In this document: in pieces, positions 3,865-48,174 of the stretch | How positions within the stretch are numbered: position 1 is the first letter of the stretch | Layout of the letters: each line of letters opens with the position of its first letter | Source: Entomortierella parvispora E1425 | Lineage: Eukaryota; Fungi; Mortierellomycota | Assembly (NCBI GenBank): GCA_020891255.1 | Contig: BQFW01000008.1 | Location: 3,224,001 to 3,288,000 of the forward strand | Length of the DNA stretch: 64,000 nucleotides | Direction: 5' to 3' | The notes under the pieces: generated by a model | Databases searched by the model: none | What the model saw: the letters and a program-made list of their open reading frames with translations, nothing else | What the model was told of the DNA's origin: nothing | Position numbers and translations under genes: made by a program

Positions 3865-8681
<4,817 letters not shown>

Positions 8682-36829: not shown

Positions 36830-37347
36830 ATGTCTGGAAACGTCGGCTGGGATGACGAAATCGTCCTCCGCAAGAGATCTGATCACGCCAAGGTCACTCG
36901 TTCTGCCTCCGATATCAATGCTGCCCGTCGTGCTGGCGCTGTCGTCTCGACTGAGCGCAAGGTCGTCACAAACGCTGGACATGTTGGAGATGATTTCCGC
37001 CGTATCGCCAAGGTCGCTGAGACTGATGAGATCATCGCCCCCAAGGTCGTCTCCATGGATGTTGGAAAGGCCATTGCCAAGGCTCGCATGGAACTCAAGA
37101 TGAACCAGAAGGATCTCGGTGTCAAGGTCAACGAGAGACAGACTGTCGTAAGTGCATGACTATTAAACTGTACTGTTGTACATGAGGATCATCAAGTTCA
37201 TAAAGCTAAATTACTATCTCAACTACCAATGCATAGATCAACGATTATGAGGCTGGACGTGCTGTCCCCAACCAGCAGATTCTTGCAAAGTTGGAGCGTG
37301 TCCTCGGTGTCAAGCTTCGCGGCAAGAACATTGGAGAGAAGAAGTAA
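36830..37347 (+). CDS. MBF1: Multiprotein bridging factor 1
   Basis: [33 protein letters not shown], then after one intron [29 protein letters not shown]. Confidence 0.95.
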
Positions 37348-37679: not shown

Positions 37680-40600
37680 ATGACCCCCAGCAGGACGATT
37701 CTGATTCTTGACCATAGTCCTGCAGCGTGCCGAACACCGAGCCATGAGAGCTCCACGGGGACAGGCGATGGTGTGTACCCCGACTTTCACCCTTTGGAAT
37801 GATGCAGACTTCAGGAGATACTGGCCCCCCTACCCCCCACAGGAAGACGCGTTCATTCTAACTGACTGTATTTTAATTGCCAATAGAGGATGACTTTGAA
37901 CTGGATCCTTGCACCATGTGGATGAGCTTTATGGATGCTGCATTGCATTACACACGACTGTCGTTGGAGTTGGCTCCAATCGGAAGAAAAACTCAGGTGC
38001 GGCCTCTGGAGACAAGACGGAGTTTTTGCGCCAACGCATACAATGGAGTCTGACCTGGGAAATGTGTAAACTTCGTTTTCTAGATCTCGGTGCATGCTGC
38101 CCCAGGAGTTACGCCCACAGGCCCCAGTGTCATTATCAACAACTGGACGGCAGAGGAACAAAGCTTGGACCATGTGGCTTCACAGTTGCAGGTGCTTCGA
38201 CAAGCGACAACGGCTGCAGCGGCATCGGCTGAAGACAGTTCCATGGAAGAGGAGCAGCAGCAAGGACATTGGATTGAGCAGGCGTTGCAGGGAGCTATTG
38301 CTCATATCTTGGAAACGTCTCCCATGACATCTGTTCCCACCGCTCCGCTGGCACCACCACCAGCATCGCAGAAAGGAGCAGCAGCACCTATACCCCCTGC
38401 CCCGGTGACTAGCTCTGTGGCGATGGCGGCCAACATTGTGATTGTCCTTGCAGATGAAGATCCTCGAAAGAAAGTGAAGGCAGAATCGCGGGATGTAGCC
38501 ATCAACGGGGGCGGTCGTGTCAATAGTGACCAGCAGGAGGACCAAGAGTCTGCATGGAGTTATGGTGATGGGGATCTCAGGAAGATGCTTTACTCTGTCC
38601 TCCACTCCCTGCGAGATGCTATCAAGAGTACCAAGTATGTAATTTCAGCTGGATCTTGAAGGCTATAATAAGATCGTAGCGCAGTATACTAACCCCTTAC
38701 TCTAACTTTCCAGGGTCCCAAATATCCATGTCGATTTCATCAGGATATCATCTAGTCAGGACTGCAAGAGGCTGGATGTTATTGGGAAAGACGTAAGGGG
38801 CTGTTGATTGTTTTTGACAAGTGCAGGACAAAAGCTCGGTTTTTGAATCGAGGCAGTTCTAACCCGATCTTTCTTGTTGTGCACAGATATCAAGAGTTTG
38901 TACGGCATCGGTATACACTGTCAAGACTGTGGATGATAGATCAACAACGGCTGCTCTCACGAATCACTTTCTTAGTCGAAATAAGGACGTGCACATTCTT
39001 CGCGTCCACAACATGAGTTTAACCAGTCGCACAAAGGACTTGCCGGTCGATGTGCTCTATCGTACAAGCCATATCAAGCCTAGAGTGCCAAAGGCAGAAA
39101 ACTCAGGAAGTGACACGAGTGATCATCGACAAAACTATTTACAGCACAAGTGGACCAATGTTAAGGAGCTGGAGCATGGCATATCATTCACAGAAGAAAC
39201 ACGTAAGGAGCGCGGATGAGATTTGTGTCCTGGACGCCATCACAAATAGATCGAATGCTGACTAGGATATCTCATCTGGTCTGCTAGGGTTACTTCCCAC
39301 AAAGTGCTTCCACCCCGCGGCAATATCTTCGCTGTCCCTGTCTGTCTCCTTCTACGCGGCTGTTTCGAATGGTATGTATTTTGCCATTAGAGAAAACCAC
39401 TGCTTTGGCTGTGTGGCGTGCTTTTCATGCATTTCTAACAAATCGCATCTCATCGTGTAGGCGCAATTCATCTGCTGAATGACGTGAAGTCGCCATATAT
39501 TGCTTCAATGGCGCTTTTGGATCGAGATGGACAGCTTTATATCCACTGTCTAGACCAAAGTGAGGACTCGCAGGAGTTTTCTCTATTTTCGTCTGTACAA
39601 CGGCCCGTGGATGTCTCTCAAAATCATCTGGAGGTTGGTGTTGGCAGGATGATAATAGTATATCGACACTCTCTTTTTTCTTGTTTGATGACTTACTTTG
39701 TTTTACAATGGGAATAGGATTTTGTTAAAGTCATCATTGGTCCGAATGAGATTTCCCCGGGACAGGAAGCCTTTGCCGCGGAAGGAAACAAGCTATCTAC
39801 CATAGTCCCCACCGCCCTCAAGCCGACCTTCAACCAGTCAGAGCCCAGGGGTGTAGATGACGAAAGCCCTAGTTCTTCAAGCGTGAACATGTCGTTAGTC
39901 AACACCACGTCGCGACTTGACCTGGAGACACGTTGGATGGTCCAATGGGAAGGGGAGCGCATTCACCCTATTCTTGTAAGCGGTTATCCTCTCTCGAGGT
40001 GCGACCTCATATTGGATCGGAAATGAACAGAGACTGATCACCATTTTCATTGTAGCCGGCCCATGAGTATCAACTCAAGCAGTTTCGAACCGCGATTTGC
40101 AGAGCCCAGGTGACGGCAGAGGGTCTCACCACCATCCAGTCTGTCCTGGACGCGTTGATATCAGATGCTCGTCCTCTTGCACTCCCTGGCGAGCACAACC
40201 CTCTGCCAGCAGGTGGAAAGATGAACTTGCAGCAGCAACGTTTACGAGAATGCGCACAGGCCGTTGTAGCGGACATATGGATGATAGGACAACGTTTCAA
40301 GACTGTTTCGACTAGTCATTTGGAGGTAAGAAGGGAATATTATATTGTCGCTAGGAGCTGCATAGGGTGGAATTAGAAGGACTCACACCAACTGTATATA
40401 TATAAAACAGGCGGCCAAGCTGATTGCGGGAAAAGTGACACCAAAGGGATTGGACCATCAAGCTGTAAAGAGGACATTGATCCCGCCCAAGCAACGGATG
40501 GCTATGGTTTCTGCTGAAATGGCAGCTAGTCCCAACGTGGGAGGAAGCATGAACGATGGCGGGTTTGGCCGTGGTCGAGGCGGCGCGCGGTCCTCTTTCA

Positions 40601-41181
40601 GCGCAAGAGGCGGTGCCATGGCAGGAGGAGCCGGTGTTGGCCGAGGTCGAGGAGGGCCAGGCGGGTTCCGAGGTGGGCACAGTGGTGGCATGGGTGGAAA
40701 TAGTCCAGTGTTAGGCGACGGTGGCAACTCGGACGGCACGATGGTTGTGACTGGTGAGAACGACATCATGTTGAGTATGACTGGTAAGACGCAGCCCGTT
40801 CCCTACCTGACAACGACTCCACCGACAAGGGACGAAATCGAAGAATCTGAGCAAGAATACCTGTCACAGTTGGGAGAAGATGGATGCTTGTTGAAAGCCT
40901 ACTGGGGCTCGCGAGGCGCTCAGGGGTCTTCTTTGGCGGTGGTGTTGAATTCAATGCATTCGCTCGATACTGTCGCCGGTCCCGTGGATACAGCAGCACC
41001 AAGGCAACCACAGCTGCATCAGCAGCAGCGCCCTGGAGGTCTGAAGAAAGGGAGTATCAAGCGACTCCGACTCCAGGATTTTGCAGGACGGACGCCTGTA
41101 GTTGAGAATGGCGGTCATTCCACCAACAGCAACCAAGTCGGCAGCTTTTCCAATATGTCCTCCCGTGCTGTCGACATGTAA
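37680..41181 (+). CDS. INTS13: Integrator subunit INTS13/Asunder homolog with RGG-rich insert, multi-exon
   Basis: The spliced product matches human INTS13 blocks in order (from memory): RTILILDHSP~KTVFVVDHCP; TMWMSFMDAALHYTRL~SLWTCSVESSMEYCRI; IINNWTAEEQSL~VLNSWTQEDQNL; MALLDRDGQLYIHCL~HMLSSHGGEIFLHVL; LQDFAGR~HQEFAGR. Confidence 0.8.
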
Positions 41182-42475
41182 AATAAAACCAAACGTGTAC
41201 TTGTACAAAAAAAAACTGGCCCTTGATTGGCAAATTGAGAAACAGATGGACTCGAAACAGATCCCTTTTTGCCCCCATCCCCCTGGAGGCAACCAAGACT
41301 GGAACGTCGCACAAAGATCCGGAGGACGGCGAACATGTGAGTCCCTGTTGAATGTTATTCAACACAAAGGTCAAAGTCTATCCCGACCCGGTGCAACACC
41401 AGCAGCAGCGGCAGCAGCGGCAGAAGTGACCCGAGTCCATCTGCGATTGCATCGATACGATTCTCAAAGTCATATCTGACAGTGCCCTATTTGACACGAT
41501 GGTTCAGCGTTTGACATGAGATATCGGTGTCCATCAGGCATGGATTGACACAGCAGCACACGGGGGGGTTGTGGTTGGTGAGAGATAACGGAGCAGAAGC
41601 AGATGACGCTCGGAGTCTGCAGGATGGATGGGCTAGTGTTTTGTGGAGTGTGGAGTACATGGCAGATGTGGAGCTGCGAGCCTGCAGGACGGGCGAGTGG
41701 GGTAGGTTGACCCAAAGAGCGCGAAAAGAGAGCTTTTTGGGGGAACGAGCTGTCCGTGATTGGTCGCGGCCAAAGGGGAGGAGGAGGATCTTCATCCTCT
41801 CCAACCAGCTGGACAGACAGACCCTCCGTAGAGTTGATTTCCCCCTTAGAGAGGGCGGAGGGACCAGGATCGAAACAATCGATTTCCATGTGAAAGAACA
41901 AAAGGGCAACCCCACCTCCTCTTTCTTGTGCGATGGATTGCACCACCGCCTGCCATTGTGGCCAGAGGCGAGTCGCCTCCCTCCCACGCCTTGTCCGCAC
42001 TCGCCCACAGAGCGACAGAGCGACAGACCGACAGAGAGTCGCTTTTCCCGCCCGGGCGGCAGTCAAGACGAGAGCGAGAGCGAGAAAAGAGACAGGATGA
42101 GAGCCAACAACGCAGGGCTGATCGTGGAGAAAGAAAAGAAACCGTAAAACGAAACGAAACGAAACGAAGCAGACCCAAAAAAAACAGACCATGCTGGGAG
42201 GGGAGGGCCCTTTTTTCAAACCCCACAACTTTGTCCTTCTCTCTGTCTGTCTGTTCTCCTTCTGTGTCTGTCTGTGTCCCTTCCCTCTCTTCTCTTCTCT
42301 CTTTGCTCTCCCCTTCTTTGCATTCATCCTCATTCATCCGATCCATATACTCCTCCTCCTCCTCCTCCTTGTCTGCACACTCATACGCTTACCCCCCCTC
42401 ATCCATTGCTGCATCGAGTCTCGTCCTCTCCGGTCTTTTGCATTTCTCTTCCATACTGAACCGTTCCTTTCTACT

Positions 42476-42478
<3 letters not shown>

Positions 42479-42521
<43 letters not shown>

Positions 42522-42526
42522 CACAC
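42479..42526. repeat. (AC)n microsatellite, about 18 perfect units, just upstream of the Opi1-like ATG
   Basis: Directly visible; ends about 10 nt before ATG 42537. Confidence 0.95.
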
Positions 42527-42536
42527 AACAAGCACC

Positions 42537-45500
42537 ATGCCGCCAGCCCCTGCCAAGGCCCAGGCCATGTCCATATCGCAGTTGTGCCAGCAGAACGACT
42601 CGGCGGAAGATTTGACCCAGCACCATCACCGCCCCATCAAACAGGAGCTGGACGAGGACCCTTTGGACCTCAGCGAGGATCACCATCGGACCAACGGCGG
42701 CCACAGTAACACTGGCCACTCCTCGGACGAATTTGAAGAGTTTGATGACAGCCCCTCCCGATCCAGAGCCAGCAGACCCGACCCAGCAGCGGAGCAACTG
42801 GCGGCCGAGGTGCTCGGAGATATGGCTAATGTGAATCGATCCTCCTCAGGCTCTTCCTCCTCCGCGTTTGCCGCACCAGCAACACCATTCATCTCTCGTA
42901 TGTCCAGTCTTCCCCTGGTCAACTCTGCCCTCAAAGCCTATGAGTCGGGCAAACAAAACAGCAAAGTGATGAAGGTGAGTTTTGCTTTAGCTTTTGACTT
43001 GTGCCTTGTTCACATCGAGTGGATATTCCTCCATCCCACAGAACTATTTGTTGAGACAGCGACATCACTTTTGGGCGTGGGGAAGCAGGGGTTGTGAGGG
43101 CATGACATTCGATACCCCTCCACAGACGCTCGTGCCCACGGCGTGGGCTGCTGCAACAAAGAGCATGATCATTGCCAAACATATGCATATCTCCCCTTCA
43201 CTCACATGCACCCGACCCTGATGCATTGGCTTGTTTCTGGTGTCCACCATATCAACGCGAGCACACACACACGCTCCCAACGACCTGTTTATTTCTTTGG
43301 AAAATGGTCAATGTCAAACAATGGTGTGGATGTTGGCTCTTTGTTTTGTTTGTTGTCCTCCACAACATCATTCCACACTTTCCCCACTTCCTTCCAATCG
43401 TTATCGCTATTATCCCTTTCAACGATCGCCATGCTCCTCCGACTTTGATCCGCTAGGTTGTGGGGTTGTTGGGAAATGATATTTCAGCTGTTTATTCATT
43501 TCGGGAAACTGAGAGCATTCTGCACAACTCATTCTCACGGATAAAAACGAGATGGATGAGGATCGATATCCATCATGCTTGGCATACCGCTCTCAGGTGG
43601 TCTGGGCTACCTTTCCTGTTGACACATACCACCCCATTGGTCATCAAAGACAGTGAACTGGTTATTTGTCCTTTGTTGAATTCAGTTTGCTGTGCTCTCC
43701 TCGACCATGCCAATTGCTCTCTCAATTCAGTTCACCATCTAAACAAAAAACAACGTTTGTGTGCCTTCCTGCTCGTTAGTATGGCGCCGAGATGGTCGAG
43801 TCAAGTGTAAAGTCGCTCTCCAAGCCTGTATTCGACAAGCTTGAGCCCAAGCTGGGTCAACTCGATGACTTTGCCTGCCGACAATTAGACAAGGTAACAT
43901 CGAGAGACATGGAGTGAGGTCTTTTGATATCCTTCTTGTGCTTGCTCGTACTTACAGTCACATCGTCATTAGGTCTATCCAACAAAGTCAGACGCGCAAA
44001 CCCTTCCCTCCCCTGCAAACTCTGCTCGATCCTCGAACGACATTACGCCCGAAAATCGACCCAACGGCAATGTTACTGCTACCGCCACCGGTTCTTACTT
44101 TCCATATCGTTCCCGAGGAGACAGCATCGATAGCACCTCCTCCAACACCAGTTCCCGGCAGAGTTTTGATATTCTTCGTTCACGCAGCGCGCGTCATGAA
44201 GAAGGTAATTCCTTTTCTACTGCAATTGCGTCATTCTTGAGGGTCCTTTGACATTGCTTGCTAACACCATGACACCATCACTTGCATCCACAGCCACATT
44301 AAGGCAGCGTTCGGATTCTCAGTCGAGTCAAAGGAGTTTCCAGCACCCTCCCGGAAACGGATACTATCCTCAATCGCAATCACACCAACAAGTCAGCAGC
44401 GTTTCTACCGCACCATCCCAACAGTTTTCAGGTTGGCGAGGTGTAGTGGCCACCGTGGGAACAGCCTCCGCGGCCGGAGTGGCCATTTTCAGTGAAGAGA
44501 GCATGAAGTCCCTCAAATATTGTCTTCAGTGGTTGCAGTATGCAGTCCAGCATATTGATCATCAAATTGGTCTCTTGCGCGCCTTCTTGGTCTCGCTGGC
44601 AAACCCTTCCCAGAACCGGGACTTGGTCGTGCCTTCGACTGCAGCCTCGACCTTGGCTTCCATCAAGAAGGAGGTGGTTGAAACCCTGCGCAAGGTCATC
44701 CAGGTTGTCTCTCGGTATGCAGGAGCATGTTTGCCTGATCAGGCAAAAATCAGTGTTCGCCAGTTTATCTTGTCGATGCCTGTCCGCTGGGCGACCTTGA
44801 ACAACAACGAGTCCGTGCCATCCACCCCCATGGGTTCTCCTTCGCTGGGACCCCGTGCTGACAGGTGCCCCGAAGAAGCAGCTGCTCTGAATGATACCTC
44901 TGAGAGGGCTACCAAGATTTTGGTTTTGGCTCACGAGTCGTCGGACATGCTCAAGTCCGTTGCATCCATCTTCAAGGACTCGGTCGACAAAGCCGAGAAC
45001 TGGATGGACAAATTGAGATATGTCGGTGTGAACCCTCAGAACAACAGCGAAGGTCTGCCCAGCTGGGCACCAACAGGATTCCCAGGCACCCCGGGTGGAT
45101 CCATGCCGGGCGGCTTCCCTGGAACAGGCGGCGGCAGCACTGGCCTTGAACAATACTCTTTGCGCCAATCTCAACAACATCACTCGTCTTCATCGTTGGC
45201 CGGAATGAACAATGACGGCGGCATCAGCAGCACCAACAGCAGCCACCCTTCCAGTGGTATGGGGTCTCCCTCCAAGAGTCTCAAATCGTCCCCATTCCAC
45301 CACTCTCACCGGCATGCCTATCGCCAAAAGGATAATGCCATGTCAGCAGATGAAGATTCCGCCAGTGAGGCTGAAGATCATATGGGAATGGACGACAGTG
45401 GCAACGAGCAAGAGATGGACGAAGCTGCACTGTTGGAGAGTGCCCTTGAAGGCGATCAAACTCCTGGGGTGCATGCACCATTGAAGCGCAGCATGGGATC

Positions 45501-45639
45501 AGCGACTGGAAACAGCGCCTCAGACAGCAGTGCCGTTCGCCGGCGCAAGAAGAGAGGGGAGAGCGCAGAGGCTGTATCATCCAATGGTCAGCATCACGAC
45601 GGATATAACCATGTCAAGGAGGAGCAGATGAACATGTAG
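42537..45639 (+). CDS. OPI1: Opi1-like transcriptional regulator, 4 exons
   Basis: LPLVNSALKAYE...YGAEMVES, SEESMKSLKYCLQWL, KKEVVETLRKVIQVVSRYAGACLPDQAK..VRQFILSMP.RW and KILVLAHESSDML motifs. Intron 1 is 42975-43779. Confidence 0.88.
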
Positions 45640-45710
45640 TGGACATTATTCCCACCCTCTGATCAGCCATTTTTGCAGACAGACAAACAGACAGGCAGCC
45701 CACTTTTGTA

Positions 45711-45951: not shown

Positions 45952-48174
45952 TCAAGCATTGGTGGCAGTCTGTTGAAGGATAGTCTCCAATTCTGGACTC
46001 CAGATATCGACGCATTTCTGGGCATTGAGGCTCAGCGCCAAGGCCTTGAGAGTTGCTGTATCGCTTCCTGCGGCTATTTTGAGTGTCGCAGGAGAACCGC
46101 CTGTTGTCGTCGTGGTGGGGGATGGACCGCCACAAAGCATCTCGGATGCAACCATGACCGTCGCCAGGGCCTTGTCCAAGTTCCAGGACCAGTGCCTCTG
46201 ATCCATCATCACCACATTTTCCCCCGAGATTGCGATCTGGTTCATGTCGGCCAACGTCCTCGTGGCAAGACTGTGCGAGAGGATCAAGAGTTTTGAATGG
46301 TGCACCCAATGTGCGATCCAGCGAGACCATTCCTCCTGCATGATCACCTTGTCCGCCGACAGGAAAAAATCATTTTGCAGACCATCCCGCCGATGCAACG
46401 AATGGTGCTTTGTTTTCTTGATCGAGCCCAATACTTCGTTCTCATGATCTTCGTCATCATCATCGGCGTCCTCGAGACTGAGACTGGGCATGTGAAAGCC
46501 GGTGGAGGGCACTGTAGAGGAAACAGAGATGGCCATGTCACCTTCAGTTTCGAAATCCTCTCCACCCAAAAAGAGTCCCTCCGATTCGACAGACATTTCA
46601 GCGACAATCTCTTGGTCGTTTTCGAAAGCTGCTACCGGCTGGTTCCTTGATGAACTGTCCTTGCTCTTGGATGATGGCGAGGGGGAGGAGGAGGAGGAGG
46701 AGGAGGAGGAGGATGTGCCACCGCTCTTGCGACGAACACCCATCACCCAATCCTTGAGATCCTTGATAATGCGGTCTTCAAGCTTCTGAACCATGTCCTC
46801 TTGGGTGGCGATCAAAAACTCTTTTGTCTGTGGAGCGGTTGATTCCATGCCATAGAAGAGCGTCTCCCGGCTCCGGAGGTGATTCATGACATATTGGATC
46901 TGGACAGACAGTTTCGACAGGATAGAGTCTCTCAGCTTGGGCAGACAAGATCGGGAAGAGCAGAGGAGAATGGGGCCATTGGCGCCTGTTCCGCCGAGAT
47001 TCGCGTTCTGGTCCTGATGGTGGTGTTTATGGTGCCGCCCATCCTTGTCGCTATGGTGCCGATGCTTTCTGCTGCGATCCTCTTGCTCCTTGTCGTCGTC
47101 CACCTCAGACTCGTCATTGTCATCTCGTCCATCTCCTCCATGCTTGAGATTGGTAGGGAAATGGTCATGTTTGTCTTCATCGTATCCTTCGTCATCGTCT
47201 TCATTGACATTTCTGTTGTTTGATCTTGAGCCATTGATGCCGATTTCCTGCTTTCGGCGTTTTGAACCTCTATGATGGTCGTCTTCCTCTTTCTCCTCCC
47301 TGTCTTCGTCATCGTCATCGTCATCTTTGCTGCCTCTGCGGGAGAGATTCAAAATGACCATCTCGTCTTCAGATGCGAGGTCATCAGCATTGACGGCATC
47401 GGATGACAAGTCGCCTCCAGTCGAGGAAGAGAGGTCCAAAACGACGACGTTTTGACTTTCCATGCCTCGAGGAACCGTGGCTAGCATTCGCTCCTCTACG
47501 TCCTCAATCAATTCTGCAATCTCGCTCGCGTCAAGGTCATTTCCAATATGAACAGTCTGCCCACCTGGAAAGTTCAAGATGGCATCCCATTCCCTAGGAA
47601 TGTCTTCGTCCTCGTCCTCTTCTTCTGGGTCATCGCCATCATCGCTGTCATCATCCTCTTCATCCTCCTCGTCCTCGTCCTCGTCCTCATCCGCCATACC
47701 CGAGTGCTCCAAATCTTGCGTTGCCAACCATGAGACTCTTTCCTGGGTATGGCAAGAAGCAATGGTCGAATCTGCTGATTTTCCTCTCACGATCTTTGTG
47801 ATGGAGGTGGTAGAGGAAGAGGTAGTGCTGGTCTTGAGAGGGATAATTGGCCATGAAGAGGAAGAGAGAACTCCATTTGCAAACAAAGATCTGAATCGAT
47901 CGCGTGCCGTTGTTGTGGACGAAGGTCCGAAAAAAGTAGCTGGTGGTGCTCCTGCATTGGTAGACAGGTAGTAAAGACTTGTGACGATTAAAACAGCCAT
48001 CGCCAGAGGAAGACTGAGAATCAACCAAGGCCGTCGAGACACTGCAGGGCGATTCGTCTGAAAATCATTGGTCGTGCCAGTGTCATGGAGGTTGCTCTTG
48101 AGTATTGGCTGTTGGTGCGTGACCCGGGAGGCTTGACCAAGGTTAGCGATAGGTAAAAGTGAGCTGGGCTGCAT
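45952..48174 (-). CDS. Hypothetical single-pass membrane protein with Asp/Glu- and His-rich tracts (740 aa)
   Basis: Long intronless ORF with a TM segment PWLILSLPLAMAVLIVTSLYYL and acidic and poly-His tracts. No family recognised. Confidence 0.75.
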   Translation of the reverse strand: MQPSSLLPIANLGQASRVTHQQPILKSNLHDTGTTNDFQTNRPAVSRRPWLILSLPLAMAVLIVTSLYYLSTNAGAPPATFFGPSSTTTARDRFRSLFANGVLSSSSWPIIPLKTSTTSSSTTSITKIVRGKSADSTIASCHTQERVSWLATQDLEHSGMADEDEDEDEEDEEDDDSDDGDDPEEEDEDEDIPREWDAILNFPGGQTVHIGNDLDASEIAELIEDVEERMLATVPRGMESQNVVVLDLSSSTGGDLSSDAVNADDLASEDEMVILNLSRRGSKDDDDDDEDREEKEEDDHHRGSKRRKQEIGINGSRSNNRNVNEDDDEGYDEDKHDHFPTNLKHGGDGRDDNDESEVDDDKEQEDRSRKHRHHSDKDGRHHKHHHQDQNANLGGTGANGPILLCSSRSCLPKLRDSILSKLSVQIQYVMNHLRSRETLFYGMESTAPQTKEFLIATQEDMVQKLEDRIIKDLKDWVMGVRRKSGGTSSSSSSSSSSPSPSSKSKDSSSRNQPVAAFENDQEIVAEMSVESEGLFLGGEDFETEGDMAISVSSTVPSTGFHMPSLSLEDADDDDEDHENEVLGSIKKTKHHSLHRRDGLQNDFFLSADKVIMQEEWSRWIAHWVHHSKLLILSHSLATRTLADMNQIAISGENVVMMDQRHWSWNLDKALATVMVASEMLCGGPSPTTTTTGGSPATLKIAAGSDTATLKALALSLNAQKCVDIWSPELETILQQTATNA

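Follow-up and report, generated by a model that had tools for sequence, protein, structure and literature searches.

Does a soil fungus of the Mortierellomycota encode a homolog of INTS13 (Asunder), a subunit of the Integrator complex, which has been stated to be absent from yeast (PMC7347597, PMC10312363) and restricted to metazoans (PMC9006982)? The question is raised by a gene in a 64,000-nt stretch of Entomortierella parvispora E1425 DNA (contig BQFW01000008.1; here, the window, to which all coordinates refer) that a sequence-only reading had assigned to INTS13. In the searchable literature, no paper was found that describes the complex in Mortierella or in other fungi that diverged early. 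Our analysis indicates that the gene is best explained, and quite probably so, as the E. parvispora ortholog of INTS13/Asunder, a divergent copy for which an Integrator role is proposed by analogy.

Gene model, deposited annotation, and family

The INTS13-like gene lies on the + strand and extends from position 37680 to position 41181, exactly as the sequence-only reading had placed it, with the ATG at 37680 and the stop codon ending at 41181. Splicing of its 10 exons yields a 2703-nt coding sequence for 900 amino acids without internal stops, and all nine introns (79 to 116 nt) are of the GT..AG type with CTAAC/CTGAC-like branch sites. Because residues 41 to 900 of the spliced model are 100% identical to the deposited E. 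parvispora protein EMPS_06676 (P0015, 860 amino acids), exons 2 to 10 agree with the deposited annotation (exon 2, 37887 to 37996; exon 3, 38084 to 38634; exon 4, 38714 to 38792; exon 5, 38887 to 39202; exon 6, 39288 to 39371; exon 7, 39461 to 39633; exon 8, 39718 to 39975; exon 9, 40056 to 40325; and exon 10, 40411 to 41181, stop codon included). Exon 1 (37680 to 37770, amino acids 1 to 30), which begins MTPSRTILILDHSP and encodes the first strand of the vWA-like domain (ILILDHSPAA), is absent from the deposited model, in which the first 40 amino acids are missing. The predicted exon 1 sequence is kept in 12 orthologs (RT[IV]LILDHS), and in orthologs bearing this N terminus residue 6 aligns to position 6 of the Pfam profile PF10221 (Mat89Bb/INTS13).

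More than 25 orthologs from several genera are conserved along their whole length. A phmmer search with exon 3 against 1.84 billion representatives returned only 14 proteins, and every one whose source was looked up belongs to the Mortierellaceae. Word-indexed searches with P0002 (the closest full-length ortholog, 62% identical to the E. parvispora protein) and with alignment A2 also retrieved Mortierellaceae only, through a filter that needs shared 5-mers and could miss distant INTS13s. Several deposited ortholog models are truncated or split, as might be expected of a misprediction or of a decaying pseudogene with leftover resemblance to INTS13; we reject this reading, to which we assign a negligible probability, because the frame is open over ten exons with canonical splice sites, the orthologs are conserved at full length down to a tail with 33% invariant columns, and the gene order MBF1-gene-Opi1 is common to E. 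parvispora and Podila verticillata.

The sequence-only reading had left it undecided whether databases already annotate the gene. In public databases EMPS_06676 is named "hypothetical protein," and the NCBI and UniRef names of all family members are "hypothetical" or "uncharacterized"; PF10221 is precomputed for five orthologs (Podila spp. and Mortierella sp. GBA30), EMPS_06676 not being among them. As a practical correction to the annotation, names can be given to more than 25 "hypothetical proteins," and a predicted first exon, missing so far, is added to the E. parvispora model.

Similarity to INTS13 in sequence and predicted structure

The call of an INTS13 homolog, made earlier from the DNA letters, is borne out by sequence profiles, language-model neighbors, and predicted structure. 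(i) In the Pfam comparison that had been suggested with that call, PF10221 is the best or sole match in 16 of 18 orthologs (E values, 2.5e-8 to 0.13), three of which pass its gathering score of 25 bits (P0007, 33.5 bits; P0024, 28.3; P0031, 25.7). The matches span profile positions 6 to 153 only (6 to 393 in one ortholog) and run start to start wherever the ortholog N terminus is intact; P0015, in the deposited form that lacks the first 40 amino acids, has no Pfam match, and eight exons submitted singly gave no relevant one. (ii) When a family HMM (alignment A1) was compared with 177,635 PDB sequences, the top five matches were all INTS13 (best E value, 1.5e-6), and the next had an E value of 0.46. 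The match consists of two collinear stretches, in which profile positions 12 to 77 correspond to human residues 49 to 107 and positions 223 to 401 to human residues 215 to 393; the VIINNWTAEEQSL block of exon 3 aligns to human VLNSWTQEDQNL. A profile of the helical domain (A4) found no match in the PDB. (iii) In the ESM Atlas feature search, ranks 1 to 3 are INTS13 clusters (0.92 to 0.93, with 182 to 191 shared features), INTS14 scores 0.91 and Ku 0.88, and rank 10 is a plant cluster bearing M1AP_N; exon 5 alone yielded nothing usable. As judged from these sequence comparisons and from the models below, the collinear similarity to human INTS13 exceeds chance.

The structural evidence comes from P0002. 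An AlphaFold2 model of its residues 1 to 700, based on a 28-sequence alignment, is of medium confidence (pLDDT, 60.3; pTM, 0.54); an earlier run on full-length P0002 with 12 sequences was poor (pLDDT, 38.6), and structure searches with it already favored INTS13. The comparison with human INTS13 by AlphaFold and Foldseek, likewise proposed with the sequence-only reading, gave a match across all three domains: INTS13 chains occupy ranks 1 to 4 (E value, 2.8e-21; TM by target, 0.51; about 695 columns), compared with E values of 7.4e-9 for INTS14 and 1.1e-6 for Ku (TM by target, 0.26 to 0.27). In a VIA-align scan of 48,161 representative chains, performed without the Foldseek prefilter, INTS13 reached a Z score of 26.9 (419/517 aligned; model residues 1 to 659 onto chain residues 3 to 564), the best non-INTS13 chain 13.7, and Ku 11.7. 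Over INTS13 chains in general, about residues 1 to 662 of the model align onto residues 3 to 564 (417 to 436 of 517 residues; Z, 25 to 27), with a whole-chain rmsd of about 15 A because domain orientations differ between the model and INTS13. Taken alone, the vWA domain (model residues 1 to 313 versus 8pk6_A residues 3 to 236) aligns over 209 of 229 residues with a Z score of 19.3 and an rmsd of 3.0, and, in the earlier model, the helical domain (541 to 659 versus 9ep1_A residues 455 to 564) aligns with a Z score of 8.2 and an rmsd of 2.7. The best match in an Atlas shape search was also an INTS13 cluster (TM, 0.47/0.46 over 402 residues).

INTS13 is composed of an N-terminal vWA-like domain, a central beta-barrel, a long linker, and, C-terminally, an alpha-helical domain (PMC7347597), and this order is present in the P0002 predicted structure. 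Transferred to the E. parvispora gene, the predicted regions are a vWA-like domain (amino acids 1 to 310; 37680 to 38985, introns within the span), placed by the alignment of the ortholog model with 8pk6_A; a beta-barrel domain (amino acids 311 to 443; 38986 to 39558), whose strands at model residues 315 to 444 fall inside the INTS13 full-chain alignment and which is also touched by the second HMM stretch; a long, low-confidence interdomain linker (amino acids 444 to 535; 39559 to 39918), with a pLDDT of <50 at ortholog residues 447 to 538; and an alpha-helical domain (amino acids 536 to 679; 39919 to 40515), with a pLDDT of 63 to 93. In the helical domain of INTS13, a loop that joins helices one and two, with LxPF (human residues 427 to 430), is threaded by the INTS14 linker (PMC7347597). 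The fungal family has conserved proline-containing loops, IVPTALK (amino acids 497 to 503), ERIHPILP (548 to 555), and RPLALPGE (593 to 600), one of which may correspond to it.

It is very improbable that the gene encodes another member of the vWA/beta-barrel/helical-arm class, be it an ortholog of INTS14, a relative of Ku70/Ku80, or a protein like M1AP. The architecture is indeed common to these proteins, INTS14 and Ku come up further down each ranking, and the plant cluster with M1AP_N does come up in the feature search. However, Foldseek E values favor INTS13 by 12 orders of magnitude over INTS14 and by 15 over Ku, the TM values by target point the same way, and the Pfam models of Ku (PF02735), IntS14, and M1AP match none of the 18 orthologs. 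Furthermore, the N-terminal motif is D-H-S-P-A and not an intact D-x-S-x-S, as in INTS14 (PMC7347597). With weaker VIA-align and ESM ranks in addition, an INTS14 or Ku identity was rejected. INTS13 homology is well supported by the profiles and models, and the protein is a divergent, previously unannotated Mortierellaceae member of a known family.

C-terminal tail and proposed role

Past the helical domain, a disordered tail contains a glycine-arginine-rich (RGG) box (amino acids 695 to 737; 40561 to 40689) recognized by its composition, with 23 G and 7 R in a region of 56 residues, and this composition is kept across the family. A counterpart is absent from every INTS13 match obtained, and the box may be an addition relative to INTS13. 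The C-terminal conserved module that follows (amino acids 762 to 879; 40762 to 41115), which runs through MLSMTGKTQPVPYL, LGEDGCLLKAYWG, and KRLRLQDFAGRTPVVENGG, is the best-conserved part of the protein within the family, with 33% invariant columns and 62% mean identity; the proportion of invariant columns is 17% in the helical domain and 1% in the interdomain linker, the least conserved part. Helices are predicted in the module at P0002 residues 800 to 841 with low confidence (in the model with a pLDDT of 38.6). The sequence-only reading had described similarity to human INTS13 in order from the N-terminal region to the C terminus; this was found, in sequence or in predicted structure, from the vWA-like domain through the helical domain and not in the tail, where family profile A3 and two single pieces compared with the PDB, and an Atlas search with residues 715 to 860, all failed to give a match.

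By inference from studies of human INTS13 (PMC7347597; bioRxiv 10.1101/2024.01.24.576984), an INTS14-like protein probably joins the three folded domains in a pseudo-symmetric dimer resembling Ku, which would bind adaptor proteins as well as RNA or DNA. The C-terminal module, which closes a long disordered tail, probably anchors this dimer elsewhere in the machine, by analogy on the INTS4-9-11 RNA-cleavage module; because the tail has no detectable sequence similarity to INTS13, this link is one of analogy only. The protein would then assist in the cleavage and termination of short transcripts made by RNA polymerase II, snRNAs among them, and the RGG box may contribute separate RNA binding.

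The sequence-only reading had further proposed that the fungus retains at least part of Integrator, including the INTS10-13-14 module. On a wider scale, there is a real chance, somewhat short of even, that an animal-type Integrator, complete with its INTS13-containing arm module, still works in Mortierellomycota and was lost in the studied yeasts and moulds, and that the fungal INTS13 gained an RNA-binding RGG box along with a docking module specific to the lineage. A competing explanation, which we regard as unlikely, is that an INTS13 descendant outlived the rest of the complex and took another job in this fungal lineage, such as binding RNA through its RGG box or acting as a homodimer. Such a history would fit the strong divergence from animal INTS13, a C-terminal module and an RGG box that match nothing in INTS13, and reviews that call Integrator absent from yeast or metazoan-restricted (PMC7347597, PMC9006982). 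However, all three domains of the human INTS14 interface are retained in the fungal predicted structure, INTS13 folding has been argued to depend on INTS14 (PMC7347597), and a conserved module ending a disordered tail mirrors the position of the human cleavage-module-binding motif.

The presence of an INTS13 ortholog in Mortierellaceae implies that at least INTS13 is older than the divergence of animals and fungi and that the better-studied fungi lost it afterward; a piece of a termination machine usually called animal-specific thus survives in an early-branching fungal lineage. If Mortierellomycota do have a working Integrator, the loss of the complex moves to within the fungi. Mortierella species are genetically modifiable, and, if the remaining subunits exist there as well, these oil-producing, culturable fungi could serve as a simple system in which to study Integrator.

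Comparison with known systems

The closest known system is human INTS13 (Asunder; PF10221, Mat89Bb; PDB 6SN1_A, 8PK5_A, 9EOC_A, 9EP1_A, and 8RBX_m). Like the human protein, the fungal one is predicted to proceed from a vWA-like domain through a beta-barrel, a long linker, and an alpha-helical domain to a disordered tail ending in a conserved module, and the two have short sequence blocks in common, such as the one in exon 3. Unlike human INTS13, to which it is 12 to 14% identical, the fungal protein is about 200 amino acids longer, its vWA domain being interrupted by inserts of low complexity and its tail carrying a glycine-arginine-rich box. Human INTS13 has a conserved helical cleavage-module-binding motif (residues 649 to 694) near the C terminus of its disordered tail, whereas the fungal module shows no detectable similarity to it.

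Human INTS14 (PDB 6SN1_B and 9EOC_B), the pseudo-symmetric partner of INTS13, has the three-domain fold class in common with the fungal model and matches it much more weakly, as the Foldseek values above show. In INTS14, the vWA domain opens with an intact, conserved MIDAS motif, D-x-S-x-S, through which INTS10 is bound (PMC7347597). The fungal site, in contrast, reads D11-H-S13-P-A15 (family consensus, LDHSxxA), and the intact D-x-S-x-S metal site is absent. The DNA-end-binding Ku70/Ku80 heterodimer resembles the fungal protein in its vWA, beta-barrel, and helical-arm architecture, with Foldseek E values of 1e-6 or worse and VIA-align Z scores of 11 to 12 confined to residues 1 to about 450 of the model, and among structures outside Integrator, Ku is reported to be the nearest relative of INTS13-14 (PMC7347597).

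Gene model and deposited annotation

By three-frame translation and inspection of the window sequence, the INTS13-like gene was resolved into ten exons on the plus strand (37680-37770, 37887-37996, 38084-38634, 38714-38792, 38887-39202, 39288-39371, 39461-39633, 39718-39975, 40056-40325, and 40411-41181), with a coding sequence of 2703 nt (900 amino acids) and zero internal stops. All nine introns are GT..AG, measure 79 to 116 nt, and have CTAAC/CTGAC-like branch sites. The limits proposed by the sequence-only reading were exact, 37680 being the start codon and 41181 the stop codon.

The deposited Entomortierella parvispora protein EMPS_06676 (P0015; 860 aa) is 100% identical to residues 41-900 of our model, and exons 2-10 are therefore concordant with the deposited annotation. 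EMPS_06676 takes an internal methionine of exon 2 as its start and omits exon 1 (exons 1 and 2 together span window 37680-37996), so that 40 residues are missing from the N-terminus, among them the first vWA strand. Twelve orthologues conserve the exon 1 peptide (MTPSRTILILDHSPAA...), and the 900-aa model is therefore preferable. The loss of these residues is probably why the deposited form has no match in Pfam.

The protein comprises a vWA-like domain (aa 1-310; 37680-38985), a beta-barrel (aa 311-443; 38986-39558), a poorly conserved linker (aa 444-535; 39559-39918), a helical domain (aa 536-679; 39919-40515), and a C-terminal module (aa 762-879; 40762-41115). Constraint within the family is strongest in this last module (33% invariant columns), followed by the helical domain (17%), the vWA-like domain (6%), and the barrel (4%). 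The N-terminal motif is D-H-S-P-A, and an intact D-x-S-x-S metal site is absent. The disordered tail carries an RGG-type box rich in glycine and arginine (aa 695-737; 40561-40689); the box is kept as composition across the Mortierellaceae orthologues and has no counterpart in any INTS13 match.

Sequence and structural resemblance to INTS13

Single exons gave no match to Pfam. Among full-length orthologues, the Mat89Bb/INTS13 family PF10221 was the best or only Pfam match in 16 of 18 (E values of 2.5e-8 to 0.13), in support of the proposed INTS13 assignment, with only three above the gathering score of 25 bits (P0007, 33.5; P0024, 28.3; P0031, 25.7). The matches always span the N-terminal 110 to 150 residues, and where the N-terminus is intact, orthologue residue 6 pairs with PF10221 position 6. 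When a 12-member family profile was compared with all PDB sequences, the top five matches were INTS13 entries (best E value, 1.5e-6), the first other entry having an E value of 0.46; the alignment falls into two collinear stretches and extends to human residue 393. A separate profile of the helical domain alone had no match in the PDB, and an equivalent of the LxPF loop, which holds the INTS14 linker, was not located. Ranked by language-model features, the closest ESM Atlas clusters were three of INTS13 (0.92-0.93), then INTS14 (0.91), then Ku (0.88).

AlphaFold2 was applied to P0002, the closest full-length orthologue (62% identical to the window protein), and not to the window protein itself. 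A first, full-length model from 12 sequences was poor (pLDDT, 38.6); three INTS13 chains headed its Foldseek matches (E value of about 1e-9). A second model, of residues 1-700 from 28 sequences, reached a pLDDT of 60.3 (65-93 in folded parts) and a pTM of 0.54. Foldseek against the PDB placed INTS13 at ranks 1-4 for this orthologue model (E values of 2.8e-21 to 6.9e-9; about 695 columns; TM by target, 0.51-0.52 at ranks 1-3 and 0.43 at rank 4); next came INTS14 (E value, 7.4e-9; TM, 0.26) and Ku (1.1e-6), both of the same fold class. VIA-align gave INTS13 Z scores of 25-27 over 417-436 of 517 residues, aligning model residues 1 to 662 with chain residues 3 to 564. The INTS13 vWA domain alone (8pk6_A) scored 19.3 (rmsd, 3.0 A; 209 of 229 residues), and generic vWA domains scored at most 13.6. 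An exhaustive VIA-align comparison with 48,161 representatives, made without a Foldseek filter, gave INTS13 scores of 26.9 and 26.6, against 13.7 for the best unrelated chain and 11.7 for Ku. Searched by shape, the ESM Atlas returned an INTS13 cluster on top (TM, 0.47/0.46; 402 residues), followed by a bacterial vWA cluster (TM, 0.26). The whole-chain rmsd to INTS13 is about 15 A because domain orientations differ, as is expected of a monomer model, since human INTS13 folds around INTS14.

Family distribution and gene neighbourhood

Exon 3 matched 14 proteins and no others among 1.84 billion representative proteins (phmmer). Word-indexed searches with the best full-length match and the family alignment brought the family to about 25 members, all from Mortierellaceae and all named "hypothetical" or "uncharacterized". 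The Linnemannia elongata MAG orthologue is apparently divided between two deposited entries, P0007 and P0020, which are 569 and 361 aa long; P0007 carries an insert of about 55 aa after the first strand that is found in no other orthologue and looks like a retained intron. P0024, a 945-aa Logan prediction in the same 90%-identity cluster, covers the whole protein.

The gene lies directly downstream of MBF1 (multiprotein bridging factor 1; 36830-37159, plus strand; PF08523, E value of 6.9e-16) and is followed by an Opi1-type transcription factor gene (about 42500-45640, plus strand; PF08618, E value of 3.5e-51 on the piece at 44248-45636, with a weaker N-terminal piece at 42501-43094). This order is identical in Podila verticillata, where MBF1 occupies 7037-7623 of stretch L001, which supports orthology across genera. 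A (CA)n-type microsatellite, translating as THTHTH..., lies just upstream of the Opi1-type gene (about 42390-42520). A 740-aa open reading frame on the minus strand (45955-48174) has a weak, subthreshold Peptidase_S41 match (E value, 0.004); at the same relative position, P. verticillata has a 660-aa gene with no Pfam match (L001 17314-19296).

Proposed role and relation to known Integrator

This is a conserved, intact gene whose product is predicted to adopt the INTS13 fold, and its orthology to INTS13 is very probable. By analogy with human work (PMC7347597; bioRxiv 10.1101/2024.01.24.576984; PMC11062913), the folded part would most likely pair with an INTS14-like partner in a pseudo-symmetric, Ku-like dimer, to which nucleic acid and adaptor proteins would bind. 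The flexible tail would let its conserved C-terminal module attach to a further module, by analogy the one that cleaves RNA, and the RGG box may contribute RNA binding of its own. Overall, the protein would assist in cleaving the 3' ends of short Pol II transcripts and in terminating them. That it functions within an Integrator-like complex is favored with moderate confidence; taken as a whole, an INTS13 orthologue working in an Integrator-like machine is likely.

Papers and reviews in the Integrator field state either that yeast lacks the complex or that only metazoans have it (PMC7347597, PMC10312363, PMC9006982). The literature searched, most subscription journals lying outside its scope, yielded no study of the complex in Mortierella or in early-diverging fungi. 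The INTS13 link was already discoverable, because PF10221 is precomputed on five orthologues in public databases; the proteins are still unnamed. The result is an evolutionary observation of moderate interest, and it corrects the annotation.

The sequence-only reading had extended the ordered similarity to the C-terminus, for which we obtained no support: a family profile of the C-terminal part, two single tail pieces (against the PDB), and an ESM Atlas search with the tail gave no match. In human INTS13, a conserved helical motif (residues 649-694) within a disordered tail binds INTS4-9-11 (PMC7347597); the fungal tail resembles this arrangement in layout, but sequence resemblance was not detected. 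The Mortierellaceae protein is best described as a divergent, previously unnamed member of the INTS13 family and not as a new kind of system.
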